64,000 nucleotides of DNA from sequence record MZ475898.1. One strand, 5' to 3'. This document shows positions 40,861-57,739 of this stretch, in pieces (the stretch's first letter is position 1; the number at the start of each line of letters is the position of its first letter). Under the pieces are notes generated by a model, which worked only from the letters and a program-made list of their open reading frames with translations, had not been told where the DNA came from and did no database searches. The position numbers and the translations under genes were made by a program.

Positions 40861-40907
40861 ATCTGGACAAAATCGTGGTTGTAGCAAAAACCGTCCTATG
40901 TTATAAT
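40855..40907 (+). promoter_or_regulatory. Box promoter P9
   Basis: GCATAAATCTGGACAAAAT; TTGTAG-17-TATAAT (40902) with TG extension. Confidence 0.8.
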
Positions 40908-40913
40908 AGAGAT

Positions 40914-40998
40914 GTAGCGTAGACGTGAGGTATGCGCTATAAATTGAATGACGCGTTTTTGCTTGACTGTAAGGTAGCGGTATCTTACAGTCCTTTTT
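40914..40998 (+). ncRNA. Candidate small RNA or attenuator leader 1
   Basis: P9 followed about 50 nt later by GACTGTAAG/CTTACAGTC hairpin + CTTTTT; no ORF. Confidence 0.4.
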
Positions 40999-41116
40999 CA
41001 AGTGGCTTCGAAGTTTGAGGCTTCTTGCGAAAGGTCAAATGTACCTTTGAGCGTTTTCGGATTTACGCGGTTTTCACCGACTGCGCTCTCACTTTAAACC
41101 GCAAAGGAAATACATC

Positions 41117-41938
41117 ATGCCAGAAGCACGCAAACCTCGCCCAGCTGATCGTTTCGCTAAAGCCCGTGCAGAGAAAAACTCACCGGAGCGTCAAGATGCG
41201 GCAGCCCAGCGCACGTATAAAGACACTCCGCCTAAATCTGTTCAGGTGAAACTTGATGCTGTGGCAGCTTCTAAGAAGAAAGTTTCACGCGGCCCCAAGG
41301 CATCTCGTCCGCGTCAGTCGCCTGTTGTTGACGCAGCACCAAAGCCTCGCATTCGTGATGAGGAACGTGTGTACAATCTCGTACACATGATTCTCTCTGC
41401 GTGGAAAGCCGATGCAGAAAACGCGGCGGTAAGTGTGGGAATCATTAAAGTGTCTCGCCGTAAGATCGAGGGTGCGTTACGCGATCTCAAGAATACGCGC
41501 TTCACTAAAATCCCAGGCTTAATCAATGACGTGCTTGTCTACAATGAACTGGTAGCTGAGTTCGGACAGTGGGTGTACGTCGAGCACGACAGTCCTGATT
41601 GGATTTTTGTGCGCCTGCCTGAAAACAGCACGCCTGTGATTCGCGCTGACATTAGTTACGCCAAGACGGGTGAAACTTCCACGTCTGTTTCGACTTCTAG
41701 TGAAGTTCTGCTGAAAGATCTTAGCGAAGACGAAGAAGATGAGATCCCCGATAATGTCGAGTACGACGATGCGGACGAGACTGACGAAGACGAAGCTGAG
41801 CCGTATGACTACAGCGCTTGGTCGCTGAGTGACCTGCAGGCTTATGCAAAGCGTTATGACTTCCTGCAGCCCGACACTGAGGGGTTCGATGATCGCGAGA
41901 AGTTGATAGCAGCCATCGAGCTGGGGGAACAGCACTAA
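41117..41938 (+). CDS. hypothetical protein: basic N-terminus, acidic C-terminus with HeH-like module
   Basis: 273 aa; YSAWSLSDLQAYAKRYDF..DDREKLIAAI. Confidence 0.85.
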   Translation: MPEARKPRPADRFAKARAEKNSPERQDAAAQRTYKDTPPKSVQVKLDAVAASKKKVSRGPKASRPRQSPVVDAAPKPRIRDEERVYNLVHMILSAWKADAENAAVSVGIIKVSRRKIEGALRDLKNTRFTKIPGLINDVLVYNELVAEFGQWVYVEHDSPDWIFVRLPENSTPVIRADISYAKTGETSTSVSTSSEVLLKDLSEDEEDEIPDNVEYDDADETDEDEAEPYDYSAWSLSDLQAYAKRYDFLQPDTEGFDDREKLIAAIELGEQH

Positions 41939-41992
41939 GCACAAATATGGACAAAATAGTGGTAGTATCTAAAGCATGACCTGTGCTACACT
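41939..41992 (+). promoter_or_regulatory. Box promoter P10
   Basis: GCACAAATATGGACAAAAT, 29 nt, then TACACT (41987) preceded by TGC. Confidence 0.75.
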
Positions 41993-41998
41993 ATAGAT

Positions 41999-42053
41999 CG
42001 AATGCCTTGTAGTTTTTTGACTGTGAGTTACTTTCCGGCTCACAGTCCTTTTT
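41999..42053 (+). ncRNA. Candidate small RNA or attenuator leader 2
   Basis: P10 followed by GACTGTGAG/CTCACAGTC hairpin + CTTTTT; covaries with 40965-40998. Confidence 0.4.
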
Positions 42054-42111
42054 AAAGTGCTCTCACAAGAACGCTTTAAAAAGCACAGACTGCCTGCGCT
42101 TTTGATAGACA

Positions 42112-42164
42112 GCATAAATCTGGACAAAATCATGGTTGTATCAGAATGCTGCCTGTCATACACT
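42112..42164 (+). promoter_or_regulatory. Box promoter P11
   Basis: GCATAAATCTGGACAAAAT; TTGTAT-17-TACACT (42159). Confidence 0.8.
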
Positions 42165-42225
42165 TTAATGAGTCGAGCAATAGTGCTCGCAACAAACTAA
42201 ATCCCAATACTGAGGAGTATTACAC

Positions 42226-43833
<1,608 letters not shown>

Positions 43834-43856
43834 GTAACCTGTAGTTCTGAATACAT

Positions 43857-43874
43857 GCGGCTCGAAAGGGCCGC
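43857..43874 (+). terminator. GAAA-tetraloop intergenic hairpin
   Basis: GCGGCTC-GAAA-GGGCCGC; no U tract. Confidence 0.45.
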
Positions 43875-43908
43875 ACACTGACAACAAAGTTGATTGAGGA
43901 ATCACATT

Positions 43909-45171
43909 ATGTCAAACGCAAATAAAACTCTGCTTAACGCTCGTGTACGTCTGTCCACTGGCACAACTACTTTCATCAACAAGATTAACGCGAACGGCTA
44001 CGGCATCGATGCTAAGGGCCCACAGATTTCTGTGAAGCGTCTTGTTATTGCAGGCAAAATGCTCAAAGAGCTGGCTGAGCCGCTGCCGCAAGGTGAATAC
44101 GTTGTGCTGAACGGCGTCACTGTGAAACTGAACAAGCGCCAGCAACGTGAGCTTGCAGAGAAAACGCTCGACACTAAAGCGCTGCTGCCTGATTTAAGCA
44201 AGCTGACCTACGTTGACCCGCAGACAGGCAAAGTCACTGATTCAAAAGTGAAGGCGCCTAAAGCTGGCGCGAAAGCAAGTCTGAAAGCAACGCGTGAGCA
44301 CAACAAAGAGCCGAAGCGTAGTCGCAAACAGCACAAAGCTGAAACGAACGATCTCAAAGACAGTCTGGACATTATCGACGAACGCAAATCACCGAAAGCG
44401 TCTCTGATTGAACGTCTGGATGCAGCAATCGCCGAAGCGAAAACGAAAGCACGCCGTAAGCTGTTAGCCGAAACGTTCGACATGGACTGGGCTGATATTA
44501 AAAAGCATGGCGGTGCAGGTATCGTTAAGCAGCATGGCCGCAAGAACGCCCAGAAGTTTATTGATCGTCAGACAGTGCAGGTCGATAGCACAACGTTCAT
44601 CAAACAAATGCCAGCGCCGCTCAAGCGTCTTATTCAGGACACTGAGTTGCGTCTCAATCAAAAGCAGATTGAGCAAGTGCTTGGTGCGCTGGGGCTTGAT
44701 ACGCAATTCTACGCAGTCGCCGTGCAAGAGCTGCTGGGCAAACTCAAACTGTCCATAGGCGGCCGCGTGATCGAAGGCGAAGTTGTTCGAAAGGAGAACA
44801 CGCCGAAGCCAAAAAGGTTCGTACACGCTGAGGCGCAATACGCAGATAAGAAAGAAGCGAAACGCCGCGTAAGCAAAATGAAATACGCGCTGCTGATTCC
44901 GCCTACGAAAGGTCTGCCTGCGTTACGCATTCATCAGGCAGAGGCAAAGCAGTCACTCGCCGTTATGCTGCACCTGAAGCCTGGGAACATCAAGCGTGGT
45001 CTGCTTGCGTATGACAACAAAGGCCGTGAGTATATGTATGTCGCTTGCGATATGACGGGCCCTGTGTTCATCGATAAAGATAGCAACGAGCTGGCGTTCA
45101 CGTATGCCAATCTGATCGATAACTTCAAACTCAAAGCGCAGCCTGTGTCTGAACTGGACGTGGCCGTATGA
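43909..45171 (+). CDS. lysine-rich multi-domain protein (basic paralog of 42226..43833)
   Basis: ATG 43909 after hairpin SD; N-terminal about 50 aa align without gaps to the previous gene. Confidence 0.88.
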   Translation: MSNANKTLLNARVRLSTGTTTFINKINANGYGIDAKGPQISVKRLVIAGKMLKELAEPLPQGEYVVLNGVTVKLNKRQQRELAEKTLDTKALLPDLSKLTYVDPQTGKVTDSKVKAPKAGAKASLKATREHNKEPKRSRKQHKAETNDLKDSLDIIDERKSPKASLIERLDAAIAEAKTKARRKLLAETFDMDWADIKKHGGAGIVKQHGRKNAQKFIDRQTVQVDSTTFIKQMPAPLKRLIQDTELRLNQKQIEQVLGALGLDTQFYAVAVQELLGKLKLSIGGRVIEGEVVRKENTPKPKRFVHAEAQYADKKEAKRRVSKMKYALLIPPTKGLPALRIHQAEAKQSLAVMLHLKPGNIKRGLLAYDNKGREYMYVACDMTGPVFIDKDSNELAFTYANLIDNFKLKAQPVSELDVAV

Positions 45172-45554
45172 GAACTGAAATCATCGTAGCGGGAGTTCTC
45201 TCTCAACTTTACACGCGGCTGATTACGGCCGCTATAATGAAAGCGCATGTGTATTACTCAGACCTTGCGCCGGTGGTGTTCGGTGTGCAGCTTACCAAAG
45301 TCGGTAAGTCGCAGTATCAAGCGCTGTGGGATTTAGTAGCGCTGACGATGCAGATGGACCACGCACACGGCCGACCGCCTGTTGCTGCTCTGTATGTGTC
45401 TCGCGCTAATGCATCAAAACGACCGCCGCAAGCATTCTTCGCTGAATACGAGCGGCTAACTGGTAAGCGACTCAATGACGACGACTGGGAAGAGTTAGTC
45501 GATGAAGTATGGGCAGCTTACTCTCCACCAGAAATCTGTCAGGAGCCGACATGA
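45168..45554 (+). CDS. hypothetical protein (possible winged-helix fold)
   Basis: VYYSDLA..GRPPVAALYVS..PPQAFF pattern. Confidence 0.7.
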   Translation: MRTEIIVAGVLSQLYTRLITAAIMKAHVYYSDLAPVVFGVQLTKVGKSQYQALWDLVALTMQMDHAHGRPPVAALYVSRANASKRPPQAFFAEYERLTGKRLNDDDWEELVDEVWAAYSPPEICQEPT

Positions 45555-46009
45555 AGAAGTTGAAAGCCGTAAAGGTTAAAATTAGCCGCGGTGGTTATAA
45601 GCCTTCTTCTAAGGAAGAGGCAAAGAAGCTGGTGGCAGAGTTTCTGCTCGGTACCATCGGCATTAGCCCAACGCAAGTCAGTCAACAACTGCTGTTGAAT
45701 ATCACGAACTACAACTATCTGACCTCTGTTGCGTATTCTGGACGTTCTACAGATTACAGCCAAGCGGCAGCGCACAAAACTGTAAAAGAACTAAATGAAT
45801 TTTGTCGAAAGCATAAAATTCAACTGGGCTTGCTAATTATGCCCCACACGTCGGCGTCTGAATATGATGGTGACGTAATTGTTGCAATCCCGTGGGAGCA
45901 TGTTAAGAACAATCCGCAAATCCAGTCTGCCGTTAATTCTCTGTTTGAATCGGTTGAAGCAGACGGCTACCCACAGTATGTGACTGATGCTAAAACAGTA
46001 GAGGGATAA
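45551..46009 (+). CDS. hypothetical protein
   Basis: ATG 45551 after AGGAG. Confidence 0.75.
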   Translation: MKKLKAVKVKISRGGYKPSSKEEAKKLVAEFLLGTIGISPTQVSQQLLLNITNYNYLTSVAYSGRSTDYSQAAAHKTVKELNEFCRKHKIQLGLLIMPHTSASEYDGDVIVAIPWEHVKNNPQIQSAVNSLFESVEADGYPQYVTDAKTVEG

Positions 46010-46010
46010 G

Positions 46011-47291
46011 ATGTTCTACGACTATGTATTCAACTTCGACGAGCGCCAGACGCTACTGTCGTTAGCGGAATCCAAGTATCTTCTTAAACGGGACATTCCC
46101 GAGTATCTTAAAAAGTCCAAACACGCAATTGAGATTCGTCACACTGTGACCAATCGTGGACGCGAGCGCCGCTCAGGAACAATAACAACTCCTATCGTGC
46201 CGCGTATTCACACCCGTGATGTTATGCGCTTGCTTGATGATATTCGTGACAACGCGACTTACAGCTCCTGCCAAAGTCTCGCTGAACTGTTTGAATTGGG
46301 CTTGGGCGTTCCGCGCCAGAAAGATATTGCTACTTACCTTCATGCTTATTCGCGTGAGCACGACAAGAAAGGTATCGGTATCAAGTATATCCGCAAGCTG
46401 GTGGTTGATTATCATCGTAAGCACCGTCGTAGTATGGCGGGCAGTCGCTGGTTAATGCCTGCTGCTTACACGGCCAATCTGCTGAACATGCAGAACTTCA
46501 TTCATCTGAAAGAAGACGGCTACAAGGGTAAAGTCAAAACGCCAGACGGCATCCCTGTAGTCTTGATTTACCAGAGCACTGAATACGCGACTGGCGAGTT
46601 TACTTTGTGTGACGCATTCATGATTAGTCCGATGGGATATCCAATGCCGTTCGCACAGATTGCGCTGCGTCCCGAGTTCAAGGCTGTGCCTAAAACGTTT
46701 TGCTCCCAAGCTCTGCGCGGCAAAGGCATGTACTCAATGGTTCTCGGTATGATTTACTGGGAGAAAGGTGATTCAGTCGAATTGACCCGCGAAGTCATGG
46801 AGATTGATGATAACCAGTATCTCACGTTGCTTGATGATGAACGTTACGCTGACCGTCGCTCTGATGAATATTCAGCGATGCTGGTCAAGCGTGAAGAGTT
46901 CCGTCGTAATCGTGACAAGTGGCAGTCAGTGATTGATAAGTACGGCCAAACAGTTCGAACTCTCAAGCCTGAGATTAGCGCTCGTCTTGATCGTGCTCGT
47001 CAGTTCTTCTACGACCGTGCCGAGTTCCTGAAAGAGTTCGAGTCTCAGGAGAAGCGTGAGAACACCCGCGCATCAAAACGTTTTGCTGTAGCGTCTGCGA
47101 TGTTTGCAGCGGTTGACTGTGGGACAATTGCTGATCGTCAGACCTACCTTGCAGTAAGCACAAAGATTGATAAAGTGCATGACATTCTCGGTAAGTGGGG
47201 ATTCAACACTGTAAAATCTGTTAATGCTAGTTTGAAGAAGTCTCTTTTAACCTATGACGAATCAGGCGTATCTCGCGTCTGGTCACTATAA
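46011..47291 (+). CDS. hypothetical protein with a Sel1-like repeat
   Basis: 426 aa; CQSLAELFELGLGVPRQKDIATYLH. Confidence 0.8.
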   Translation: MFYDYVFNFDERQTLLSLAESKYLLKRDIPEYLKKSKHAIEIRHTVTNRGRERRSGTITTPIVPRIHTRDVMRLLDDIRDNATYSSCQSLAELFELGLGVPRQKDIATYLHAYSREHDKKGIGIKYIRKLVVDYHRKHRRSMAGSRWLMPAAYTANLLNMQNFIHLKEDGYKGKVKTPDGIPVVLIYQSTEYATGEFTLCDAFMISPMGYPMPFAQIALRPEFKAVPKTFCSQALRGKGMYSMVLGMIYWEKGDSVELTREVMEIDDNQYLTLLDDERYADRRSDEYSAMLVKREEFRRNRDKWQSVIDKYGQTVRTLKPEISARLDRARQFFYDRAEFLKEFESQEKRENTRASKRFAVASAMFAAVDCGTIADRQTYLAVSTKIDKVHDILGKWGFNTVKSVNASLKKSLLTYDESGVSRVWSL

Positions 47292-47312
47292 CCCTTATCT
47301 GAGGAGATAAAC

Positions 47313-50300
47313 ATGTCCGAGAACAATCAAAGCGGAGCTACTCGCTTCGGCACAGAAGTGCAGGCCGGCATCGCAGAAGCGCAACGCCGTGCTAACTCTG
47401 CTGAGAGTGGCAAGCTGAACAAATGCACGATCATCGTGCTGACTTCGATTGACGCCAACCAGCGTTACTCTTATCTGTCCGCAGACGAACAACTGCGCGA
47501 AGAACTGGTGCGTGGTAAAGTAATCAATCGTCTTCCTGATCTGTTAGAGCGTGCTGGTGGTAATACCGCTGCTGACAATAACAGCGCGTTCCACATCCTG
47601 CACCCGAACAACGGTGTGCCTACCTCGATCGATGCTCGCATCAAAGTGGGCGAAGGCAATGCGGTCATTCTGTCATATACTGTAAACAAAGCAGTGACAG
47701 AGATGCACGGTAGCTTATCGCTTGCTCTGTTTGCATCTGGCGCCGAAGACTTAAATGATCTGGCCGCTGATTTCGGTATTCACGCAATTGCGATTGTTGA
47801 AGAATCGAAAGCCGCTGAGTTCATCAAAGGACTTGAAGCTCAGGTGGAAGCGTTGAATATTGTAAATCTCACTAGCATTGATGATTCTAACGATTCGTTA
47901 GACCTGCCAGTGATTGACTTCGCTGCATTAGCGGGCAATCCTACAACAGTGCTTACGGGCGCTGTGCGTACCTTCATCATGCAATCAATCAGCGGCGAAG
48001 TCTTCGCTGCAATCCCTAATAACGGAGAACTGAACGTGAAAAACGATAACGTGGCTCAGCCTGCTGACCTGGAAGAAGACTTCGACAACAATGATGAGAT
48101 TGTTGATCAGAACGGCGGCGAAGGCGAAGTTACTGGCGAAGAGCTGCTGGGCTACAAAGCAGAAAATCTTTCGCTCGACCAAATGCGTAGTGCGCTTGAA
48201 GCGATCAACTACGACCTGTCTGAAATGACGGAAGAAGCAATCCGTGAAGCGTTCGAAACTGAACAGAACCTTTACCTGGGTGGTGGCGATGATGAATCTT
48301 CCGAAGAAGAGGAAGATGAAGACGCCGCTGATGTTGACAGCGACGACGAAGAAGAGGAAGAAGACGAGGAGTTCGATGCTCCTGCGTATCTGGCTCAAGC
48401 GCTCGCTGCTGAAAACTTTAGCCGTAGCGATCTGAAACTGCTGGTCAAGTCGCAAGACCTGAAAGTGATGAAGAACGACACTCCTGAAACTCTGGTGCAG
48501 AAGCTGCTGGATCTGGTACAGGATGCATCGTCTGATGAAGTGTTCGAACTGATCACTGTGTTCGTTGAACTGCTGGACGAGCACGGCGTTGAATGTGACG
48601 CGCTGCGTGCTACCATCGCTGAGGATGAAAGCGATGAAGACGAAGAAGAGGACGGCGAAGACGAAGACGCCGATGAAGATGGCGACGACGAAGAAGAGGA
48701 AGATGAAGAGGAGTCTGATGAAGACGAATCTGAAACCGAATCTGACGACGAACCAGCAACGCTGTTTTCTCCCTCTGACGTTACTGATCCTCTCGACTAC
48801 TTCCAGTTCGAAGGTGGTGACCTGACTCACGAACAACGCGCCGCTGCCGTACAGGCGATGGGCTCAAGCACCGCCGGTCTGAACATCGTTCAGGTCATGA
48901 AAGCGTTCAATCAAATCCGTTCGCAGTCTAACGCGATTGACATTGCCGCTGATGAAGCAGACTCTGCGCTGTACGATGTGCTGACTGCGCTGCCGTATGC
49001 AACGCTGCTGAGCTTCGCTCAAGAGATTGAGCTGGACGTTGATGGCGAAGAGTCTGCCGAAGATCTCGTCACTCTGCTGATGGACGAATCTACTGCCGAC
49101 AGCGATACGCTGAAAGCGTTGGCGTATGTGTTCGAAACCTACGGCGGCCTGGGTGTTGAAGCAGATGATATCCTGCTGATGGACTGGCATGAAGCGCTGG
49201 CGCTGGTTATTCCTGTGTATGCATCGTCAGACGAAGTTGAGTCCGATGCAGAAGAAGACGAAGACGTTATCGCTGATGAAGATTCGTCTAACGCTAACCT
49301 GAAGTTCCTGAAATCTGTTGACGTCAACAACCCTGTCGGCCCGATGCTCGAAGTTGATATGGACCGCACTCTGGTTATCAACTACACCTTCACTGACGGT
49401 AACACTTACCGCGATGTGCAAGATGAGCTGGCTGATATCGGTGGCGTTAACTACCGCTTCCCGTTCAATCTGGGCAAAGCTGGTAAAGCAAACAAGAGCA
49501 GCGCGCCTGGTAGCCTGATTGCTCCTGCTGAACATCTGATCGCAATGTTAGACCGCGCCGGTACTACTCGCTTCTTAGCTGACCCGAACACCTTCGATGT
49601 TGGTGTGTGGGCAGAATCTCTGGAGCGTATGCTGAACGCAGAAATCGCTAACAACCTGTACGCTGGTCGCATTGAAGACGGCGCTGACCCGCAGCAAGCT
49701 GGCATCGTAGTCGGTGACTTCATCGATGAAGACGAGCAAGCAGAAGTTGCTGACCTCGGCCTGCTGGATGAAGATGAGCTGGAAGCGTACACTGGTGATC
49801 ATCTGCCGATTGCAAGCCTGTACAATGCGCAAGCCCGCGTCCGTCCAGTCAACGTCGATAGCTCTTACGTTGCACTGAGCACCGTAGTGCTGAACGTTGC
49901 AGTCCCTGGCTTCTGGTGTGACTCTGATGTTGGCCGTCTGGTGCAAGCGTGTGTTAATCGCGTAATCAGCCTGGCGGAAAGCGTTGAAGGCATCAAAGTG
50001 TATGCAGGCTTCACTCTGGAATCTGCTGCGCTGCTGAACAACGGTCGCCTGTACGAAGTTGTTGGTGCGCTGCGTGAGATGGACGGTGTGCAGTCTTACT
50101 CTGCCGCTGACGCTGCTAACTTCTCAGAAGCGGAAGACATTATCGAAGTAGCGTCTTCTATCGATGATCGTGACCTGCCGTTCACTGTACTGGCAAGCGG
50201 CCTGTCTGGCGCAACGTTTGAAAACGGCGGTGACCTGACCGTGCTGGTTCCGTGCTCTGTCTTCGACGAAGAGGAAGATGAGTCCGAAGAGGACGAGTCA

Positions 50301-50318
50301 GAAGAAGACGAAGAGTAA
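47313..50318 (+). CDS. very large acidic protein with several HeH-like modules
   Basis: 1001 aa, D/E-rich tracts, hairpin SD, strong codon bias. Confidence 0.92.
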   Translation: MSENNQSGATRFGTEVQAGIAEAQRRANSAESGKLNKCTIIVLTSIDANQRYSYLSADEQLREELVRGKVINRLPDLLERAGGNTAADNNSAFHILHPNNGVPTSIDARIKVGEGNAVILSYTVNKAVTEMHGSLSLALFASGAEDLNDLAADFGIHAIAIVEESKAAEFIKGLEAQVEALNIVNLTSIDDSNDSLDLPVIDFAALAGNPTTVLTGAVRTFIMQSISGEVFAAIPNNGELNVKNDNVAQPADLEEDFDNNDEIVDQNGGEGEVTGEELLGYKAENLSLDQMRSALEAINYDLSEMTEEAIREAFETEQNLYLGGGDDESSEEEEDEDAADVDSDDEEEEEDEEFDAPAYLAQALAAENFSRSDLKLLVKSQDLKVMKNDTPETLVQKLLDLVQDASSDEVFELITVFVELLDEHGVECDALRATIAEDESDEDEEEDGEDEDADEDGDDEEEEDEEESDEDESETESDDEPATLFSPSDVTDPLDYFQFEGGDLTHEQRAAAVQAMGSSTAGLNIVQVMKAFNQIRSQSNAIDIAADEADSALYDVLTALPYATLLSFAQEIELDVDGEESAEDLVTLLMDESTADSDTLKALAYVFETYGGLGVEADDILLMDWHEALALVIPVYASSDEVESDAEEDEDVIADEDSSNANLKFLKSVDVNNPVGPMLEVDMDRTLVINYTFTDGNTYRDVQDELADIGGVNYRFPFNLGKAGKANKSSAPGSLIAPAEHLIAMLDRAGTTRFLADPNTFDVGVWAESLERMLNAEIANNLYAGRIEDGADPQQAGIVVGDFIDEDEQAEVADLGLLDEDELEAYTGDHLPIASLYNAQARVRPVNVDSSYVALSTVVLNVAVPGFWCDSDVGRLVQACVNRVISLAESVEGIKVYAGFTLESAALLNNGRLYEVVGALREMDGVQSYSAADAANFSEAEDIIEVASSIDDRDLPFTVLASGLSGATFENGGDLTVLVPCSVFDEEEDESEEDESEEDEE

Positions 50319-50325
50319 TTGACAT

Positions 50326-50343
50326 GCGGTCCTTCGGGGCCGC
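50326..50343 (+). terminator. UUCG-tetraloop hairpin
   Basis: GCGGTCCTTCGGGGCCGC followed by AATCTTTCT; identical to 3190-3207. Confidence 0.55.
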
Positions 50344-50369
50344 AATCTTTCTCAACAGGAACTGTCTAA

Positions 50370-51191
50370 ATGTCAGAACAAGTTGACCACGCAACTAACA
50401 TCATTAAGATGGTTAGTGACCGTGATGCTAAGATTAGCGAGCTGTCCGTTACGGCAAACGAGCTGCAAGGTCAGGTTAATGACTATGCAGCCGAACTCGC
50501 CGCATCTGCTGTGCGTGAAACTGCATTGCGTTTGAAGCTACGTTCTCAAGAGCGCCAGACGAATACTGATTTAGTTCGTCTGGAAACTCGCACGAAAGAG
50601 CTGGTGGATATTTCAAACACTCAGATGGCCGAAAGCAACGAGCTTAAAGCACGCGTTGAAGAAATGAACGCTAAGCTGGCGCAAGTTGACCCGATGCCGT
50701 TCGTGCTGCATCTGGTTGCTGTGCAAGCCGCATCTGTGTTCTCGTACATGGTGCAGTCGTTTGCTCATGCTCATGTTAACCAGCGCACCAACGATACCAC
50801 ACGCACACTCAGTGCTCTGATGGTAGGCGAGACAGCGCGGCGCTATCAGTCTTTCGAAAAGACCATCGCTCGCTACTGCAACTCGATTGGCGCTGAACGT
50901 CCGAAAGCAAATGATGTGCGTAACGCTTTCCCTGACTTCATGCGTAATGAAGCTGATTTATTCTGTAAAGACCCGAAGTACAGTCACGATTGCATGGCGT
51001 TAGCTGCTATGCTTAATCTGCCTCGTACATCGTGGATGTATCGAAAGTCTCTGGACGCCGTAAACCACTTCGCGTGGATTGCAGCTTTCGAAGGCAGTCC
51101 TCAAGAGTTTGAGTCAGAATCAGATTACAACGAATTATACGTTAACTCGCTTATCGATATTGCAAGCGCGTTAATCGGGCAAAACTTTTAA
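50370..51191 (+). CDS. hypothetical protein with N-terminal coiled coil
   Basis: 273 aa; heptad-like N-terminal half. Confidence 0.85.
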   Translation: MSEQVDHATNIIKMVSDRDAKISELSVTANELQGQVNDYAAELAASAVRETALRLKLRSQERQTNTDLVRLETRTKELVDISNTQMAESNELKARVEEMNAKLAQVDPMPFVLHLVAVQAASVFSYMVQSFAHAHVNQRTNDTTRTLSALMVGETARRYQSFEKTIARYCNSIGAERPKANDVRNAFPDFMRNEADLFCKDPKYSHDCMALAAMLNLPRTSWMYRKSLDAVNHFAWIAAFEGSPQEFESESDYNELYVNSLIDIASALIGQNF

Positions 51192-51236
51192 TCTGTAAAA
51201 CTTCCCTGTGATTTATTCTGTAAACACTAATTGAAG
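51190..51236 (+). promoter_or_regulatory. TCTGTAAA motif pair 1
   Basis: AATCTGTAAAA (51190) and TCTGTAAACACTAATTGAAG (51217). Confidence 0.55.
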
Positions 51237-51286
51237 TTCGCAACGGGCAAAAGCCCAAATCGAAAAATTAACGGAGTTCCACTACA

Positions 51287-51856
51287 ATGGCAAAAGCTAC
51301 TAAGTCAACTAACCTGGTTCCTACCCTGGTTTCTCGCATCGCTAAAAAGTCTGGCTCTATCGGTACTTCGAAAGCAAAAGCAACTGACCTGCCGCATGAC
51401 ATTCTGATCGAATCTCAGCACGTTGTCGAAATCATCGGTTATATCACTGACCGTTCTGCGAACCACGTTACTCTGCGTCACAAAAAAGGCCACGGTTCTT
51501 CTTCTCAGATCGTTTCAACCTTCGGCCCGGGTCAACTGCTGACCGTTCTGGGTGAAGCTGGTTCACACGGTTCTGTGCGTGCGCTGATTACTGCTCCGGT
51601 CTGCGAACTGAAAGGCTTCACCATTAAGTATGACGGCGATACCATCATCGCTACTTCTATCGAAACTGGCGAAGTGATTCACGTTAACACCCAGCTGGCC
51701 GGTCACACCGTTCGCGCTACTGTGAACGAAACTGCCGCCGCTAAGAAATACGGCACGCCTGCTCCAGGCAAAGGCAAGAAAGATGCTAAGCCTGCTAAAG
51801 CAGACAAAGCAGCGAAAGGCGGTAAGAAAAAGAAAGGTAGCGACGAAGACTTTTAA
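51287..51856 (+). CDS. highly expressed hypothetical protein with beta-rich core and basic tail
   Basis: 189 aa; tail KADKAAKGGKKKKGSDEDF; strong codon bias. Confidence 0.88.
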   Translation: MAKATKSTNLVPTLVSRIAKKSGSIGTSKAKATDLPHDILIESQHVVEIIGYITDRSANHVTLRHKKGHGSSSQIVSTFGPGQLLTVLGEAGSHGSVRALITAPVCELKGFTIKYDGDTIIATSIETGEVIHVNTQLAGHTVRATVNETAAAKKYGTPAPGKGKKDAKPAKADKAAKGGKKKKGSDEDF

Positions 51857-51869
51857 TCGCTGATCTGAA

Positions 51870-51949
51870 AATCTGTAAAAACTGATTATGCAGAGCAACA
51901 AAAATAAAGTTGCTCTGCCGTTAAACGAATCTGTAAACATTAATTGAAG
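51870..51949 (+). promoter_or_regulatory. TCTGTAAA motif pair 2 flanking a hairpin
   Basis: AATCTGTAAAA (51870), GCAGAGCAAC/GTTGCTCTGC hairpin, TCTGTAAACATTAATTGAAG (51930). Confidence 0.55.
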
Positions 51950-51985
51950 CAAGTCGCTTCTCATCCCATACAGGAAATAAAAACC

Positions 51986-52786
51986 ATGGCTAAATCTGCT
52001 AAAGTAACCGTAACCGTCGCACAGAAAGTTCTGGCTCAGATGCTGGGTGTTGTTGTAGCGAACGCAAGCGAGAAAGAACTCGTTGCGATTCTGTCTGACC
52101 TGGGCCTGACTGTTGCTGCGAAAGGTAAAGGTGCTAAAGCTGAGAAAGCTGCGAAGGGCGGCAAGAAAGCTAAAGCCGCTACCGTTGCTCAGATCGTTAA
52201 GGCCGTTGAAGAAGAGGAAGCTATCTCCCTCGACGGCGTGAGTGAAGATGACCTGCGTGCAGCGGTCGTCAAAGCTAAGCTGGCTAAGGCCAACAAAGCT
52301 AAAGCGCTGGACGAAGAGGAGTTGACTGAACTCCTGACCGACGCAATGGGTGCCGAGTCTGATGAAGACGAGGAAGAGGACGAAGAAGAAGAGGACGAGG
52401 ACGAAGACGAGGACGAAGACGACTCGGACGACGAAGACGAAGATGAAGACGACGAGGACTCAGATGATGAAGATGAGGACGAAGACGACGAAGATTCGGA
52501 CGACGAAGACGAGGACGAAGATGATGAGGAGGAAGACGAAGACGAGGATGAAGATGAGGACGAAGATGAAGATCTCGACCTCGACGGCCTCGACGAAGAC
52601 GAACTCCGCGCCCTCGTGATCGATAACAAGCTGGCCACTAAGGCCAAAGCTAAAAAGATGGACGAAGACGAACTTCGTGAACTGTGTGAATCCCACTTCG
52701 GCGGCGACGATGAAGACGAAGACGAAGATGAGGACGAAGACGATGAAGACTTCGACGATGAAGACGAAGACGAAGACGACGAATAA
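51986..52786 (+). CDS. poly-acidic protein with two HeH-like modules
   Basis: 266 aa; ATG 51986 after AGGA; about 70-residue D/E/S tract including DSDDEDEDEDDE x3. Confidence 0.9.
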   Translation: MAKSAKVTVTVAQKVLAQMLGVVVANASEKELVAILSDLGLTVAAKGKGAKAEKAAKGGKKAKAATVAQIVKAVEEEEAISLDGVSEDDLRAAVVKAKLAKANKAKALDEEELTELLTDAMGAESDEDEEEDEEEEDEDEDEDEDDSDDEDEDEDDEDSDDEDEDEDDEDSDDEDEDEDDEEEDEDEDEDEDEDEDLDLDGLDEDELRALVIDNKLATKAKAKKMDEDELRELCESHFGGDDEDEDEDEDEDDEDFDDEDEDEDDE

Positions 52787-52999
52787 GTCCTGATCTGCCG
52801 CTGCCCTGCAAGACTGATGAGTGTCTGCGCAGGGCAAGAAATATTCGAAAAATAGTTCGAATTATTTCGCAAAAAGTTTGAAAAATTCCTGTCGTTGTTT
52901 ATTGCACATAGTAATATTCGACTACAGGAATTAAACCTGAAAAATTTTACTTTTATCCAACGCGACGAGTCGCACACAATAAATTCACGGAGCATTACG

Positions 53000-53512
53000 A
53001 TGACTAAGAAAATCATTTCTGGCCTGAACAAAAACCTGAAAGCTATCGCTAAATCAGAAGCTGCCCTGGCCAAAACTGTTGTTGCTACCAACAAAGAGAT
53101 CGAAAACCTGGGTTCACAGCGTGCTGGTATCGAAGCGCAGATCGCTGAACTGTCTGGTGTTGCTGCTCCTGCCAAAGCTGATAAAAAAGCTAAAGGCGCG
53201 AAAGCAGAAAAAGCGGCCAAGCCTGCTAAAGCTGAAAAAGCAGCTAAAGCCGGTAAGAAAGAAAAAGCTGCTAAAGCTGAAAAGCCAGCCAAAGCTGATA
53301 AAAAAGCGAAAGGCGCCAAAGCTGAAAAAGCTGCTAAGCCTGCTAAAGCTGAAAAAGCTGGCAAGAAAGAAAAAGCTGCTACCAAGCCTGCTAAAGCTGA
53401 TAAAAAAGCTAAAGGCGCCAAGGCCGACAAAGCTGCTAAAGGCGGTAAAGCTGACAAAGCCGGTAAGAAAAAGAAAGCGCAGTCTGATGACTTCGAATTC
53501 GAAATGGAATAA
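53000..53512 (+). CDS. histone H1-like Lys/Ala-rich protein with N-terminal coiled coil
   Basis: 170 aa; ATG 53000 after GGAG; PAKADKKAKGAKA(E/D)KAAK x3; acidic tip SDDFEFEME. Confidence 0.85.
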   Translation: MTKKIISGLNKNLKAIAKSEAALAKTVVATNKEIENLGSQRAGIEAQIAELSGVAAPAKADKKAKGAKAEKAAKPAKAEKAAKAGKKEKAAKAEKPAKADKKAKGAKAEKAAKPAKAEKAGKKEKAATKPAKADKKAKGAKADKAAKGGKADKAGKKKKAQSDDFEFEME

Positions 53513-53609
53513 GCAAGCGGTCGCATAGCGCGATAACTTGATCGAGAGGGCAGCGCTGACGGGCGTTTGCCCTCTTGTCGTATCTATCTCATTTTCGAGG
53601 CTCTTTAAA

Positions 53610-54095
53610 ATGTCCAAACAAGAAGTATTCAACAGGCTTGATGATCTTCACTCCAAAGAACGTGAGCGCAGCAAACAAGCCAAGCAAGGCCCCTCCTATT
53701 TCGAACTGACGAACCTGCGTATTGAAGCAGCCGCTCGTCTAGCTCGTGCCCTCCAAACTCTCAAAGCCGCAAACGTTGTTGGTGACGTTGAAGGTATCTC
53801 TCTGCAGGAAGATGCGCTTGAAGTCGCTCAAGCCTACTGGACTGCTATCTTAGATGGCTTAACCCCTGTAGCAGTTGATGGCTCGCCTATGCGCAAGCTG
53901 CTTGCTGGTATGCCTGCATGTATCGAAGCGTTCCGTGTTGTAGTAATGGAAAGCGCTATGCGTGAACATCTGGTCGTTCAATGCAATGCGATTGCAGATG
54001 ACATTAAGGGTTTCCCGCAACTGACTGGGCATGTTCTGCCTACTATTCAACACACCTGCGAAGAGGGATGCAACTGTGGCTCAATCACTGAGTGA
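53610..54095 (+). CDS. hypothetical protein
   Basis: ATG 53610 after GAGG; C-terminal HTCEEGCNCG. Confidence 0.75.
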   Translation: MSKQEVFNRLDDLHSKERERSKQAKQGPSYFELTNLRIEAAARLARALQTLKAANVVGDVEGISLQEDALEVAQAYWTAILDGLTPVAVDGSPMRKLLAGMPACIEAFRVVVMESAMREHLVVQCNAIADDIKGFPQLTGHVLPTIQHTCEEGCNCGSITE

Positions 54096-54846
54096 AAAGA
54101 TTAACCGTTACTTCAATCTGATGGAGGACATCCGTGCTGAGATGTTCCGCGTGATTGATGTATCTGACCGTTACTTCGGTATTGTTAGTTTCAACACTAA
54201 CATGCAGGCACTGCAAACCACACTGGTGAGCAAGTCCACCCTGATGGAAGTTAAGCTGCTTGAGGGTATCAAAGGAGCGGAGCTGATTGCGTTTGGCAAT
54301 ATGGTTCACACTGTAGAGCAATGGGTTGCTGGTGGCATGAAGGGCGCTTTCCCTATCGAGCAGACCAAAGACGTGTATGCCAAATATCGCGCTGCTACCT
54401 CAGATGGGCCACAGGCACAGAACGAACCTGAGCCTGCTAATGTACCTCAGACTGATGCAGATGTGTTAGATCCCCAAGAGCTGGACAATATCAAAGTTCA
54501 ACTTCTGTCCTTCGATGACTCTGAACTGATCGACCATGCTGCTCAGTTTAAACTCGGCACTCGTACACGCCTGCGTTGCATGGGCCGTGACGATCTGCTG
54601 GACATGCTGTTTGACCATCATGGTATCTATGCAGAAAACGACCAGCGCCGCAATGAAAGTGTCGCAGACTGGTTAGAGCGCATACCTCTTGATGATGCGC
54701 TCCGTGAAGTCGACCGCATAGATGATAGCAGTGTACTTGATCACGTTGCGGACGATATGAGCGTTATGTCGGGCGTTAATGACGCTGTGACGCGAGCGCG
54801 TATAAAGCAGTCGCTGAAAGAGCTACACACTAAGCCTGCGCAGTAA
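54076..54846 (+). CDS. hypothetical protein with HeH-like module(s)
   Basis: GTG 54076 after GAGGG; LLSFDDSELIDHAAQFKL..MGRDDLLDML. Confidence 0.75.
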   Translation: MAQSLSEKINRYFNLMEDIRAEMFRVIDVSDRYFGIVSFNTNMQALQTTLVSKSTLMEVKLLEGIKGAELIAFGNMVHTVEQWVAGGMKGAFPIEQTKDVYAKYRAATSDGPQAQNEPEPANVPQTDADVLDPQELDNIKVQLLSFDDSELIDHAAQFKLGTRTRLRCMGRDDLLDMLFDHHGIYAENDQRRNESVADWLERIPLDDALREVDRIDDSSVLDHVADDMSVMSGVNDAVTRARIKQSLKELHTKPAQ

Positions 54847-54861
54847 GTCAAATTTGTCTCT

Positions 54862-54915
54862 ACACTAAGCTGGACAGATCGTGGGTAGCGTCTGACGCTC
54901 TGCCTATGTTATAAT
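54862..54915 (+). promoter_or_regulatory. Box promoter P12 (upstream of gyrB)
   Basis: ACACTAAGCTGGACAGATC, 29 nt, then TATAAT (54910) preceded by TGT. Confidence 0.7.
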
Positions 54916-54986
54916 ACATATAGGACAAGTAGTGTCTGAATATGCTAATATCGAGTGGTCAACGCTACTCATTAGGAGAAACGAAA

Positions 54987-57014
54987 ATGGCGAAAACGCC
55001 TAAAGCCGCAAAAGTCAAAAAGGGTGACGGCTCCCAAGATGGCTTCACTATCGCAGAAGGCCTCGACGGGATTCGATTAAACCCTGGCATGTACATGGGT
55101 CAACAGGGTGCGGACATGGCGTATCGCGCTGTGAAAGAACCTGTGGACAATGACTACGATGAATACATCGCAGGTCGTAACAAGTTGATCGAAGTGGTCA
55201 TTGATTACGATAGCGACCTGAACATCGTAGCTGACCAAGCAGGCGGCATTCCTACCGATTTCAAGAAACTGAAAGACGGTACGAAAGAAACGATCATGAC
55301 CGCAGCGTTTAGCCGTGTTCATGCGGGTGGTAAATTCAACGATCAGGCATATAAGACCTCTGCTGGTACACACGGTGTAGGTGTAGCGGCACTGAACGCA
55401 ATCTCCAGTCAGTTGCGCGTGTGGTCAATGTACAAAGGTAGTTGCGCTTATCAGATGTGGCAGTGCGGCGAAGTCAAGTCTGGCAAAGACCCTAAGAAAG
55501 TCAAGACCATCGACAAAGACGTTATGAGCCTGCTGCGCGATAAGAAGCACAGCAAGTACGGTACTGTGGTAGCGTGGACGCTTGACCAGACCGTTGTGTC
55601 CGCTGATGCACAGCGCGGTAAGAAGCTGCCTAAGAACTATCGCCACGCTGCTCCAAACCCAGCTCAGCTTGGTGAGTGGCTGCGTAACATGTCAATGCTC
55701 AACCCAGGCCTTGAGATTCGCCTGACGTTGATCAAGAAGGGCAAGCGTAAAGAGTTCACGTTCATCAACAAAAAAGACCTGAACTATGTTGTGAAGACTA
55801 TGTGTGAAGAACGCGAGCTGGGAACTGTCGGCAAGCCGTTCATCTTCAAGTCTGACAATATCACTGCTGCGCTTGCTTGGACAGATCATGCAGACACTGA
55901 CAACTTCCTCAGTTTCGTTAACACCAGCCCAACAGTTGATGGCGGGTGGCACGTAGTAGGTTTCCGTGATGCGCTGTTTGATGCAATCAAGCCGTTCATG
56001 AAAGAACCGAAAGGTAAGGGCAAGAAGAAGAAGCAGGGCTTCAAACAAGAAGACTTGTTGATTGGCCTGACCGGTATGTTCGACTGGCGTATGCACGGTG
56101 CTCAGTACACCTCGCAGGTAAAAGACAAGCTGGCCAGCCGCGTCGAGAAGGACGTGTACGAAATGCTGAAAGATGCTTTCGTGAAATACTTCAAGGACAA
56201 TAAGAAGGTCGCTACGACAATCATCAAACGTGCCGAAGCGATGAACAAGGGACGTGAAGAACTCAGCGCTGTCGTTAAGTCTATGGCTGACACGAAGAAG
56301 AAGCTGAAAGGCAACGCACTGCCTGCCGACCTCGTTGTCGCAAACAAGTGTAAGCCGCATGAGCGTGAGCTTGTCGTGGTGGAAGGGGACTCTGCTGGTG
56401 GTACTGCGAAAGATGCGCGTAACCCTGACTATCAGGAAGTTATGAAAGCTGGTGGTAAGCCGCTGAACGGTCTGAAAGCAAGTCTGGCTGACGTACTCAA
56501 GCACAAAGAAGTGCAGGGTATGCTGGTGAGTATCGGTGCCGACCTGAAGTCGCTTGACCCGAAAGCAGAAGCACCAAAGCTAAGCACAAAGAATCTGCGT
56601 ATCGGCAACATCCTGTTCCTTGCTGATGCTGACCCAGATGGCTTCCACATCAACGTGCTGTTCCTCGGCGTTATCTATCGCTTGCTGCCTGACTTGATGA
56701 AAGAAGGTCGTGTGTGGATTGTTGACGCACCGCTGTATAACGTTATTCATCAGGGCAAACACTACGGTGGTATGACGTTTGAAGAATGCCGTGCTAAAGC
56801 GCCGTCTGCTGTAAAAGACAAAGACATTGTACGCGCTAAAGGTTGGGGTGAAGTTGAACCTGACGTGCTTGAAGCAATCGCGTTCAATCCGAAAACTCGT
56901 CGTCTCATTCGTGTTAACCCGTTTGAGAACGTTGAGCAGGAGCGGTTCTTTAGAGGTGTAGTTGCAGAAGATGCAGTTCACCGTCGTCGCTTGCTCGGTC
57001 TGGAGGCAGCATAA
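54987..57014 (+). CDS. gyrB: Type IIA topoisomerase B subunit (GyrB/ParE-like)
   Basis: IRLNPGMYMG, KEPVDN, HAGGKF, GTHGVGV, DGGWHVVGF, VEGDSAGG, ADADPDGFHI, RAKGWGE; 675 aa from ATG 54987 after AGGAG. Confidence 0.93.
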   Translation: MAKTPKAAKVKKGDGSQDGFTIAEGLDGIRLNPGMYMGQQGADMAYRAVKEPVDNDYDEYIAGRNKLIEVVIDYDSDLNIVADQAGGIPTDFKKLKDGTKETIMTAAFSRVHAGGKFNDQAYKTSAGTHGVGVAALNAISSQLRVWSMYKGSCAYQMWQCGEVKSGKDPKKVKTIDKDVMSLLRDKKHSKYGTVVAWTLDQTVVSADAQRGKKLPKNYRHAAPNPAQLGEWLRNMSMLNPGLEIRLTLIKKGKRKEFTFINKKDLNYVVKTMCEERELGTVGKPFIFKSDNITAALAWTDHADTDNFLSFVNTSPTVDGGWHVVGFRDALFDAIKPFMKEPKGKGKKKKQGFKQEDLLIGLTGMFDWRMHGAQYTSQVKDKLASRVEKDVYEMLKDAFVKYFKDNKKVATTIIKRAEAMNKGREELSAVVKSMADTKKKLKGNALPADLVVANKCKPHERELVVVEGDSAGGTAKDARNPDYQEVMKAGGKPLNGLKASLADVLKHKEVQGMLVSIGADLKSLDPKAEAPKLSTKNLRIGNILFLADADPDGFHINVLFLGVIYRLLPDLMKEGRVWIVDAPLYNVIHQGKHYGGMTFEECRAKAPSAVKDKDIVRAKGWGEVEPDVLEAIAFNPKTRRLIRVNPFENVEQERFFRGVVAEDAVHRRRLLGLEAA

Positions 57015-57268
57015 TGGTTAAAAGTGAAAACCTATCCATCGGAACGCAAGTTCGTTTTCTCGATATGCCTGTCTTTCAGCACCCGCCAATGACCGAAGAA
57101 CAACGCAAGCAGTATGAAGCGTTAATGGCAAAAGGTCGTGAGTTGTCGAAAAACGTTACCGTATCTGCATTCAGTGTAGTTGATGGTAAGCCTGCTGAAC
57201 GTGTGCAGGTGCAGATGAGTCGCACAACTCTCGATAAGATTAATGCGATGCACTCAGGAGATCAGTAA
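57014..57268 (+). CDS. hypothetical protein
   Basis: 84 aa, TAATG overlap. Confidence 0.65.
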   Translation: MVKSENLSIGTQVRFLDMPVFQHPPMTEEQRKQYEALMAKGRELSKNVTVSAFSVVDGKPAERVQVQMSRTTLDKINAMHSGDQ

Positions 57269-57507: not shown

Positions 57508-57739
57508 GTTCCAGCGTCACATTAAATCTCTGCCTGAATCTGGTGCCAGCTTTCAGCAAGCAGCACCGCTAGGCCGTACTGTCGTAACACGTTCAGCGGG
57601 TATCACACGCGGTGTAACTCGCATGGCTTATCCTCAGTTGCAGCAAATCCCGCGCAACTTATCGGGCCTGAATGATGTGAACGTTCGTCGCATCGATATT
57701 AACTTGGATGGAAATGTTTTCATCCAGACGCATTCGTAA
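57500..57739 (+). CDS. hypothetical protein
   Basis: ATG 57500 after GGAG. Confidence 0.65.
   Translation: MNKFQRHIKSLPESGASFQQAAPLGRTVVTRSAGITRGVTRMAYPQLQQIPRNLSGLNDVNVRRIDINLDGNVFIQTHS

Follow-up and report, generated by a model that had tools for sequence, protein, structure and literature searches.

What does a jumbo phage gain from a run of neighbouring genes whose products are either extremely acidic or extremely basic? This question is raised by the last 64 kb of the genome of the Erwinia amylovora jumbo phage pEa_SNUABM_25 (MZ475898.1, 263 kb), a stretch of 64,000 nucleotides that we refer to as the window. An initial annotation of this DNA had proposed that the block at positions 41117-57014 encodes a phage chromatin-like system, in which a histone H1-like protein, polyacidic partners and a type II topoisomerase would together condense, shield or compartmentalise phage DNA. 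We name proteins by their start position in the window (window position = record position - 199017). Positions 41000-60000 are 100% identical to the deposited record, in which each product is named 'hypothetical protein'. The window holds 96 coding sequences (CDS), every one on the plus strand, and the starts used in the initial annotation agree with the deposited ones. The core of the block is a trio of genes:

51287-51856, plus strand: 189-residue basic protein (net charge +11) with an all-beta domain, a K-rich tail (residues 161-187) and the C-terminal tip GSDEDF
51986-52786, plus strand: 266-residue polyacidic protein with a short helical N-terminal domain, a K/A patch (residues 44-65) and an acidic tail
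53000-53512, plus strand: 170-residue basic protein (net charge +27) with a heptad-patterned N-terminus (residues 6-51), K/A(P/E/D) repeats (residues 58-163) and an acidic tip

A module conserved in order and charge

The initial annotation had pointed to synteny across jumbo phages as a check on its proposal. Indeed, our comparisons support a real module, with block order and charges kept in at least six phage genera of this group. Other Snuvirus isolates are 97-98% identical to pEa_SNUABM_25, and further relatives include the Erwinia phages of the Alexandra type, Y3 (Sasquatchvirus), Yoloswag and SNUABM_5, the Dickeya phages AD1 and JA11/13/29/33, and the Yersinia phage fHe-Yen9-02. The Erwinia and Dickeya relatives have been grouped with the Pseudomonas phages Lu11 and PaBG as the 'Lupandier' group (PMC7412058). 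Y3, Yoloswag, JA11 and fHe-Yen9-02 keep the entire block in collinear order. When five phages were compared (Snuvirus, Y3, Yoloswag, Dickeya JA11 and Yersinia fHe-Yen9-02), identities fell to 30-50%, yet net charge was kept gene by gene. It ranged from -56 to -70 for 42226, +22 to +31 for 43909, -173 to -200 for 47313, +11 to +16 for 51287, -89 to -100 for 51986 and +26 to +30 for 53000.

The trio extends further than these five phages. Starting from 51287, a weak tblastn match followed by an hhalign profile comparison (98% probability) identified Lu11 gp163. In the same phage gp164 is a 159-residue polyacidic protein, and gp165 (177 residues) starts with a helical part, continues in K/A repeats and ends in an acidic tip that contains two Phe; the corresponding trio in PaBG is gp126, gp125 and gp124. 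Order and architecture of the trio are constant in seven named phages, the distant Pseudomonas phages Lu11 and PaBG included, and in 20 of 20 IMG/VR loci. Across this set net charge is -84 to -106 for the acidic member, whose length varies between 150 and 275 residues, +25 to +32 for the K/A member and +11 to +17 for the beta member, suggesting that charge, and not sequence, is what selection preserves in the acidic and K/A members. The architecture of 42226 (an N-domain, a basic tract and acidic tracts) is repeated in Lu11 gp157 and in PaBG gp131, in the latter with a visible SAP-like helix pair. By position, size and charge alone, Lu11 gp161 and PaBG gp128 look like relatives of 46011. [quoted passage not shown]

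Extreme composition and predicted high expression

Our calculations of net charge, residue composition and codon bias covered each of the 96 CDS, and the composition confirms that extremely acidic and extremely basic proteins cluster in the block, as had been proposed. The charges of the block are the extremes of the window, with a comparable acidic tract elsewhere in 28961 only. On the acidic side, 51986 consists of 47% D+E (net -99), 47313 reaches net -182, 42226 has net -69 with a 21-residue D/E run, and 41117 carries an acidic tract at residues 201-231. On the basic side, 43909 has net +29, and 53000, with 28% K, 28% A and 13% interspersed D/E, is the most basic K/A-repeat protein of the window.

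The strongest codon bias of the window also falls in the block, in line with the initial annotation. Of the 48 genes with 150 codons or more, those with the lowest effective number of codons (ENC; median 49.5) are 53000 (27.4), 51287 (36.0), 42226 (39.1), 51986 (39.5) and 47313 (41.5). The K/A and D/E tracts are tandem repeats in the DNA itself (a 102-nt unit present 2.5 times in 53000, and GAAGAC arrays) and therefore lower the ENC in part by themselves. The ENC is also low outside the repeats, at 31.4 for residues 1-150 of 51287 and 27.5 for the N-terminus of 53000. These non-repeat parts are dominated by enterobacterial optimal codons; residues 1-150 of 51287 use CTG and GAA at 100% and mainly ACT/ACC, GTT, TCT, CGT/CGC, ATC and CCG. 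In Y3 the trio orthologues, with ENC values of 32.3, 33.5 and 34.7, are on a par with the major capsid protein (35.3); polymerase, portal and sheath have values of 45-48. On codon usage, the module is thus predicted to be very highly expressed.

Two antisense open reading frames (ORFs), both Ser/Phe/Leu-rich, lie opposite the acidic and K/A genes at 52189-53526 (minus strand, 445 residues) and 42220-43419 (minus strand, 399 residues). We rejected both as genes, as they are by-products of the GAA/GAC and AAA/GCT repeats.

The proteins of the trio

The 53000 protein had been described as H1-like, and this likeness holds for composition only. Searched whole and with the repeat part alone, it matched no Pfam family even at E<=10, no NCBIfam family and no PDB sequence at E<=1, so that it is no member of the Hc1 or linker-histone families. 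A homologue search with residues 1-58 alone returned nothing; by tblastn the N-domain was found in 57 phage records only, the same number as for the 47313 family, while 51287 was found in those plus Lu11. Read from the sequence, residues 6-51 keep an unbroken 3-4 spacing with hydrophobic residues at 11 of 14 core positions. The C-terminus reads SDDFEFEME, and acidic residues flank the two Phe in all relatives.

For 51287, an AlphaFold2 (AF2) model built on a 19-sequence alignment gave an all-beta core at residues 37-146 with a predicted local distance difference test (pLDDT) score of ~90 and disordered tails. A Foldseek comparison of the model to the PDB found no significant neighbour (best E 0.045, TM-score <0.3), and comparison to BFVD returned uncharacterised proteins of Alexandra and PaBG, two further entries and, weakly, one of the Achromobacter phage Motura (E 2e-3). 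Neither sequence nor fold searches recognised an oligonucleotide/oligosaccharide-binding (OB) fold or an SSB match. The GSDEDF-type tip is found in Snuvirus and Dickeya JA-type phages only; PaBG has an acidic tip without an aromatic residue, and Y3, the Alexandra-type phages, Yoloswag, fHe-Yen9-02 and Lu11 have none. The tips of 51287 and 53000 had both been likened to the partner-binding tails of SSBs. In 53000 the SDDFEFEME-type tip is kept in every relative; for 51287 the comparison is not supported, since its tip is not conserved and its domain shows no recognisable OB fold.

In 51986, two SAP-like motifs (residues 84-121 and 201-238) stand on either side of an acidic tract of ~95 residues, and the last eight residues of the acidic tail are identical in 17 of 20 IMG/VR loci. 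Despite their acidic tracts, 51986, 42226 and 47313 had no family match, nucleoplasmin-type families included, and their likeness to nucleoplasmin is one of analogy only. The SAP-like motif is a 38-residue two-helix unit that occurs twice in 51986, flanking the long acidic tract, and once at the C-terminus of 42226. Against Pfam, the 42226 copy scored 19.2 bits for SAP (threshold 23.9) and 14.5 bits for LEM (threshold 24). In an alignment of the motif, only 2-3 of 13 copies had a Pfam match at E<=1, and a PDB profile search with the motif gave no SAP-type match. DNA binding by these motifs, or by the Ish1/helix-extension-helix (HeH)-like C-terminus of 41117, may serve as a lead only. Further SAP-like copies had been suspected in 47313, 41117 and 54076; a profile made from the 42226 and 51986 copies matched none of these, and we therefore claim only three.

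Some database names of trio members are compositional and misleading: PaBG gp125 is labelled 'similar to Utp1 assembly factor', and the K/A protein of SNUABM_5 (MW366843.1) 'putative valyl-tRNA synthase'.

Promoter-like motifs

Two recurrent promoter-like motifs, classes A and B, were apparent in the intergenic regions. The sites and hairpins within the block are as follows:

40864-40992, plus strand: class-A site TGGACAAAA at 40864 with extended -10-like TGTTATAAT, then a terminator-like hairpin at 40965-40992; leader of 41117
41948-42170, plus strand: class-A sites at 41948 and 42121, separated by the second hairpin copy (42019-42047); both upstream of 42226
50325-50344, plus strand: terminator-like GC hairpin after 47313
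51192-51224, plus strand: tandem class-B pair TCTGTAAA at 51192 and 51217; upstream of 51287
51872-51937, plus strand: tandem class-B pair at 51872 and 51930; upstream of 51986
52888-52928, plus strand: inverted repeat around -10-like ATAGTAAT; upstream of 53000, unlike classes A and B, conserved in Y3

Class A reads TGGACA(A/G)A(A/T), with TGnTATAAT or TACACT as an extended -10-like element ~30 nt on; eight matches, on the plus strand only, were counted in the window compared to 2.3 expected, and the motif precedes 41117, 42226 (twice), the large topoisomerase subunit and 59765. Class B is TCTGTAAA, with ten matches in the window compared to 2.3 expected, all on the plus strand. The tandem pair found upstream of 51287 also stands upstream of Y3_322, and in Y3 such pairs precede the orthologues of both 51287 and 51986. 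The depositors of Lu11 labelled the class-B motif 'putative middle/late promoter', and two such copies separate gp163 from gp164. In Y3, the genes that have class B 25-45 nt upstream, in gene orientation, include those for DNA polymerase A, DNA ligase and Dam methylase and several of nucleotide metabolism; directly upstream of the capsid and sheath genes the motif is absent. On this motif evidence, the most codon-biased genes of the block appear to share a signal with replication genes.

From 43909 through 47313 the gene ends overlap or abut, up to the hairpin at 50325-50344. Since at least two promoter-like classes and terminator-like hairpins divide the block, it does not appear to be one operon, and the sequence does not support a single expression unit. 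A sigma-70 consensus scan gave 17 sites compared to 15.3 expected from shuffles; as this is no enrichment, these sites were left unused. A candidate late-promoter motif common to capsid genes and 53000 was also dropped, the string upstream of two Y3 head genes occurring only there.

The hairpins at 40965-40992 and 42019-42047 are each followed by CTTTTT, lie ~55-70 nt downstream of a class-A site and have no Rfam match; they could be attenuator leaders or short RNAs. Further copies of class B are found at 3604, 13846, 23877, 28079, 50962 and 59414, and of class A at 30171, 39676 and 59449, all on the plus strand and mostly intergenic. A genome-wide map of both motifs would provide a first regulatory classification of a near-unannotated genome.

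K-dense tracts in the DNA-metabolism proteins

The K-rich tracts of the window are concentrated in the block and in both topoisomerase subunits. A scan for K-dense tracts, defined as eight or more K in 20 residues, covered 303 ORFs that we called in the Y3 genome with a simple filter; this filter dropped the Y3 K/A gene because of an antisense ORF. Such tracts occurred in 8 of 24 annotated DNA-transaction enzymes compared to 8 of 279 other ORFs (Fisher p=4e-6). The enzymes were DnaB, DNA polymerase A, SbcC, a Pol III-like protein, the SSB Y3_242, a RecA-like protein and both topoisomerase subunits, and the remainder were three block proteins, four hypothetical proteins and one MoaA-like protein. 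No K-dense tract was found in the structural arm of Y3.

The SSBs of the window, Lu11 and PaBG share ~150 residues of alternating acidic and K-rich (K/S-rich) blocks, ending in an acidic tip with Trp in Lu11 and PaBG and in a K run in the window copy. Together, the enrichment in Y3 and the charged SSB blocks suggest that charged low-complexity tails mark the DNA-metabolism proteome of this phage group, of which the block would hold the extreme and most highly expressed cases. The window copy of the SSB (positions 1-621) is the cut first gene, the C-terminal part of an orthologue of Y3_242. It is followed at 681-3182 by an 833-residue RecA-like protein (Pfam RecA 3e-22), whose orthologue in Y3 is K-rich at the N-terminus and acidic at the C-terminus.

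The topoisomerase II genes at and beyond the downstream end of the block are:

54871-57014, plus strand: class-A site (54871) and the topoisomerase II large (GyrB-like) subunit at 54987-57014, with a K-rich N-terminus and a K-rich insert
57749-59410, plus strand: topoisomerase II A-subunit (GyrA/ParC-like breakage-reunion; PF00521 DNA_topoisoIV 4.8e-58; PHROG 551)

The large subunit matched PF00204 DNA_gyraseB (2.8e-27), PF01751 Toprim (1.2e-08) and PF00986 DNA_gyraseB_C (2.6e-07) as well as PHROG 543; the GHKL ATPase domain was not among the listed Pfam matches. The A-subunit has a K-rich N-terminal extension of ~50 residues, and such extensions on both subunits are conserved in five genera. 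The A-subunit appears to be split: after 57749-59410 come two unrelated genes (424 and 179 residues) and then, at ~61.5-62.4 kb, another piece that is annotated as 'DNA topoisomerase' in relatives and had no Pfam match at E<=0.001. The initial annotation had placed gyrB and gyrA together in the block, which is right for the GyrB-like gene, whereas the GyrA-like gene lies outside 41117-57014. It had also made the topoisomerase part of the system, and this claim we abandon: what links the enzyme to the module is its neighbourhood and its own K-rich tails. We regard it as an ordinary split T4-type enzyme with its own class-A promoter-like site and do not count it in the module.

Possible functions of the module

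The reading that we tentatively favour, with somewhat less than even confidence, is that the module consists of clade-specific, abundant, non-virion proteins that act on phage DNA by charge in the replication phase, with a polyacidic partner. It draws on the conserved gene order and constant charges, the expression signals, the replication and recombination genes nearby, the K-dense tracts, the parts shared within the block and the absence from the virion proteome of one relative; DNA binding, the pairing of polycation and polyanion, chaperoning and any condensate or compartment are inferred. In such a scheme, 53000 would oligomerise through its heptad N-terminus, and its K/A tail of ~105 residues would serve as a DNA-bound polycation, in the manner of linker-histone C-terminal tails or of the bacterial K/A-repeat proteins, by analogy and not by homology. 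The 51287 protein would add a further basic component, made up of a beta domain specific to its family and a K-rich tail. Prothymosin-alpha for H1 and nucleoplasmin for histones keep polycations soluble and exchangeable; 51986, with about -90 to -100 net charges, may likewise act as a counter-ion, chaperone or competitor that keeps its polycations soluble and exchangeable. Specific contacts could be made by short Phe-containing acidic motifs, which end 53000 and 51986 and occur internally in 42226, and the paralogous pair 42226/43909 and the 1001-residue 47313 may extend the same charge logic. The polyanion-rich phase of DNA and acidic proteins might also concentrate the K-tailed DnaB, Pol A, SSB, RecA-like protein and both topoisomerase II subunits. 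Taken to its end, this leads to a shell-less, coacervate-like replication compartment, in which 53000 and 51287, at the level of a capsid protein, and the polyanions 51986, 42226 and 47313 would come together with DNA and K-dense tails would serve as a partitioning signal; this extension we consider distinctly unlikely.

Several points weigh against the favoured reading. Pfam, NCBIfam, PHROGs, PDB sequences and the Foldseek PDB and BFVD comparisons revealed no functionally characterised relative for any protein of the module, the similarity to SAP, HeH and LEM lies below threshold, and DNA binding is inferred for every member. For low-complexity proteins that are K/A-rich or acidic, RNA, ribosomes, membranes or host proteins would be equally plausible binding partners. 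The promoter classes derive from motifs, not transcripts, and the upstream region of 53000 differs from both and is unclassified. The enrichment of K-dense tracts rests on our own ORF calls and on depositors' names. Finally, codon bias at the level of the capsid protein also fits a packaged protein, and the PaBG virion proteome considered below is shallow.

The proteins could instead be directed at the host, with the K/A protein compacting or silencing the host nucleoid and the polyacidic proteins mimicking DNA as decoys, by which DNA-binding proteins of the host (nucleoid proteins, restriction enzymes or other defences) would be titrated. Hc1 in E. coli and the phage DNA mimics Ocr and Arn are models for such functions. 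The extreme charges and high predicted abundance would suit this role, 41117 and 42226 do lie behind class-A (early-like, extended -10) promoter-like sites, and Hc1 expressed in E. coli lowers DNA and protein synthesis, as summarised in PMC12619734. However, 51986 and 51287 carry the class-B motif of the polymerase and ligase genes and not the early-like one, the K-tail signature ties the block to the phage's own replication enzymes, and the long unstructured D/E runs are unlike the DNA mimics known to us so far, which are folded. Moreover, polycation and polyanion are kept together at constant charge, which a pair explains better than two independent effectors. We therefore consider a host-directed role unlikely, while still taking it seriously. 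The trio might also be internal to the capsid, either neutralising charge and packaged with the 263-kb genome, or scaffold-like or ejected, with an acidic member that leaves during packaging. A codon bias equal to or above that of the major capsid protein would fit, as would the 'middle/late' label given to the shared motif by the Lu11 depositors, and T4-type heads contain basic internal proteins and acidic core proteins. Against this, capsid and sheath genes lack a class-B motif directly upstream, no K-dense tracts were found in the structural arm, and the block belongs to the replication arm, far from capsid, protease and scaffold, with the head and tail cluster encoded on the other strand in Y3. 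PaBG gp124-126, gp128 and gp131 are missing from the 14 PaBG virion proteins identified from Coomassie bands by tryptic matrix-assisted laser desorption/ionisation (MALDI) (PMC7412058, Table 1), the numbering of which agrees with RefSeq for the capsid and sheath genes. Because this method detects K/A-rich proteins and K/R-free acidic proteins poorly, their absence is moderate evidence only. We conclude that the module is probably not an ordinary virion component, and a capsid-internal trio is in our view improbable.

Alternatively, there may be no system at all, only unrelated low-complexity genes held together by the inherited order of a conservative genome arm, with a composition produced by repeat expansion. 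The K/A and D/E tracts are indeed DNA-level tandem repeats, several promoter classes and terminators lie within the block, and the whole arm is collinear among relatives. This would leave unexplained that net charge is narrowly held while length and sequence drift, that the tips are near-invariant, that the trio keeps its order in Lu11 and PaBG despite different surrounding genes, and that codon bias is strong in the non-repeat parts; we judge it very improbable. Lower still do we place the possibility that the basic proteins bind RNA or ribosomes, in translation control or mRNA protection. K-rich tails bind any polyanion, there are weak, non-significant similarities to ribosomal uL24 and IF2_N, and a depositor's note on PaBG gp125 mentions similarity to a ribosome-assembly factor. 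Nevertheless, all of these similarities are below significance and compositional, and neighbourhood, promoter class and K-tail signature point to DNA transactions.

Comparison with known systems

H1-like (PF07432) proteins have been annotated, without functional tests, in metagenomic 'moraphage' jumbo phages (PMC12619734), and the literature that we searched held nothing on this module or on early/middle proteins of these genera. With Hc1/Hc2 of Chlamydia, AlgP of Pseudomonas and PhaF-type proteins, 53000 shares a long polycationic tail of K/A(P) tandem repeats, and its abundance is predicted to be high. PhaF-type proteins combine an oligomerising N-terminal part with a K/A/P repeat tail, and 53000 resembles them in its oligomerisation-type N-terminal helix followed by repeats. 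Unlike these types, 53000 matches no family model, has 13% D/E interspersed, bears a conserved acidic tip with two Phe and is always encoded beside a polyacidic partner. The proposed pairing of 51986 and 53000, in which a disordered polyanion (about -90 to -100) and a disordered polycation are jointly conserved, recalls prothymosin-alpha and H1 as well as the tracts of nucleoplasmin; it differs from these in that no homology and no nucleoplasmin-type folded core were found in our searches and in that 51986 has a K/A patch and two SAP-like motifs. E. coli SSB, T4 gp32 and T7 gp2.5 have acidic C-terminal tails, to which the short acidic, aromatic-containing tips on basic proteins of the block are similar. 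In contrast to the SSBs, 51287 has no OB-fold match and a tip that is not conserved in the clade, and the phage encodes separate annotated SSBs. The topoisomerase resembles the T4-type split enzyme in its two main pieces (GyrB, Toprim and GyrB_C in 54987-57014; the topoisomerase IV/GyrA N-domain in 57749-59410) and in the annotated third piece, and departs from it in the K-rich N-terminal extensions on both subunits and the two unrelated genes that split the A-subunit pieces. The Chimalliviridae, with their chimallin-bounded phage nucleus, are also jumbo phages and raise the same question of a replication compartment; the 'Lupandier' group is unrelated to them. The annotated records that we considered name no gene for a shell, a tubulin or a phage RNA polymerase; for chimallin these were the tables of Y3 and stretches of SNUABM_7, SNUABM_25, Lu11 and PaBG, and no chimallin-profile search was made. 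A compartment in this group would have to be shell-less and is purely hypothetical.

If the trio coats or condenses DNA with its polyacidic partner, it would be, within the literature searched, the first conserved polycation/polyanion 'chromatin-like' module in a tailed phage, and the K-dense enzyme tails would offer a simple rule for concentrating DNA machinery without a protein shell. A shell-less compartment, if true, would mean that phages can arrive at a 'replication organelle' in a second way, by a mechanism unlike that of the chimallin nucleus. Should the proteins turn out to be packaged capsid content or a host decoy, they would still be a new set of protein families, of a familiar kind. 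The module provides natural, compact examples of charge-conserved disordered protein pairs, and it marks jumbo phages of Erwinia, Dickeya, Yersinia and Pseudomonas that are used in plant-disease biocontrol and whose genes are mostly unannotated.

Other members of the block

The remaining genes of the block are:

41117-41938, plus strand: 273-residue protein with a basic, disordered-looking N-terminus, a central domain, an acidic tract and a helix-extension-helix-like C-terminus
42226-43833, plus strand: 535-residue protein (net -69) with an N-domain of ~60 residues, a K/A tract (residues 83-132) and a central domain
43909-45171, plus strand: 420-residue protein (net +29)
45168-46009, plus strand: two small genes (128 and 152 residues) whose ends overlap their neighbours
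46011-47291, plus strand: 426-residue basic globular protein, conserved across the whole phage group by alignment
47313-50318, plus strand: 1001-residue protein (net -182) with an N-domain, a conserved C-domain (~645-1000) and an acidic tail
50370-51191, plus strand: 273-residue protein whose N-terminal half is helical and coiled-coil-like
53610-54846, plus strand: two overlapping genes (161 and 256 residues) between trio and topoisomerase, mildly acidic and variably conserved

Searches of all block proteins against Pfam, PHROGs and NCBIfam returned topoisomerase domains and 'unknown function' PHROGs only, and PDB sequence searches with 46011, 51287, 53000 and 43909 gave nothing significant (best uL24, E 0.32, to the N-region of 43909). 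An all-against-all BLAST of the window proteins with low complexity masked found no paralogy within the block. Comparison of orthologue alignments by hhalign did reveal the SAP-like 38-residue motif and a homology of the N-domains (~60 residues) of the acidic 42226 and the basic 43909 (96% probability, E 1.5e-9), the remaining matches being compositional. By this profile comparison, 42226 and 43909 are a paralogous pair with opposite tails. Beyond its central domain, 42226 continues with a poly-E tract (residues 310-373), a second acidic tract (461-500) and the SAP-like C-terminal motif (500-535). The overlapping gene ends suggest that the two small genes at 45168-46009 are co-transcribed with 43909 and 46011.

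The least conserved member of the block is 41117, with homologues in 51 phage records that frequently lack the acidic tail; its isolated C-terminus scored 25.3 bits against Pfam Ish1, below the cut-off of 26.6. In 47313, acidic tracts of the central region alternate with short helical segments. An exhaustive HMMER search of 1.84 billion representative proteins with 47313 found 14 clusters, restricted to the clade and of 860-1140 residues except for one 144-residue fragment. An AF2 model of 46011 had a pLDDT of 75.7 and a predicted TM-score (pTM) of 0.67. Its best Foldseek PDB match, the adenylation domain of the NAD-dependent ligase LigA, was not significant (E 0.03, TM-score 0.21-0.28); we rejected this assignment and keep it as a weak lead only. 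One Sel1-like helical repeat signature can be seen by eye in 46011, more clearly in Lu11 gp161.

Other features of the window

Rfam and tRNA scans of the window gave no matches. Unusually long unannotated gaps occur at 6365-6766 (402 nt), 8590-8844 (255 nt) and 13126-13461 (336 nt) in a genome arm that is otherwise tightly packed. Within 16052-17224 there are tandem small paralogues, of which 16052 and 16433 share 29.5% identity over 105 residues (E 2.6e-16), and the intergenic stretches 16370-16432 and 16751-16813 are almost identical, which suggests a gene cassette that was duplicated locally.

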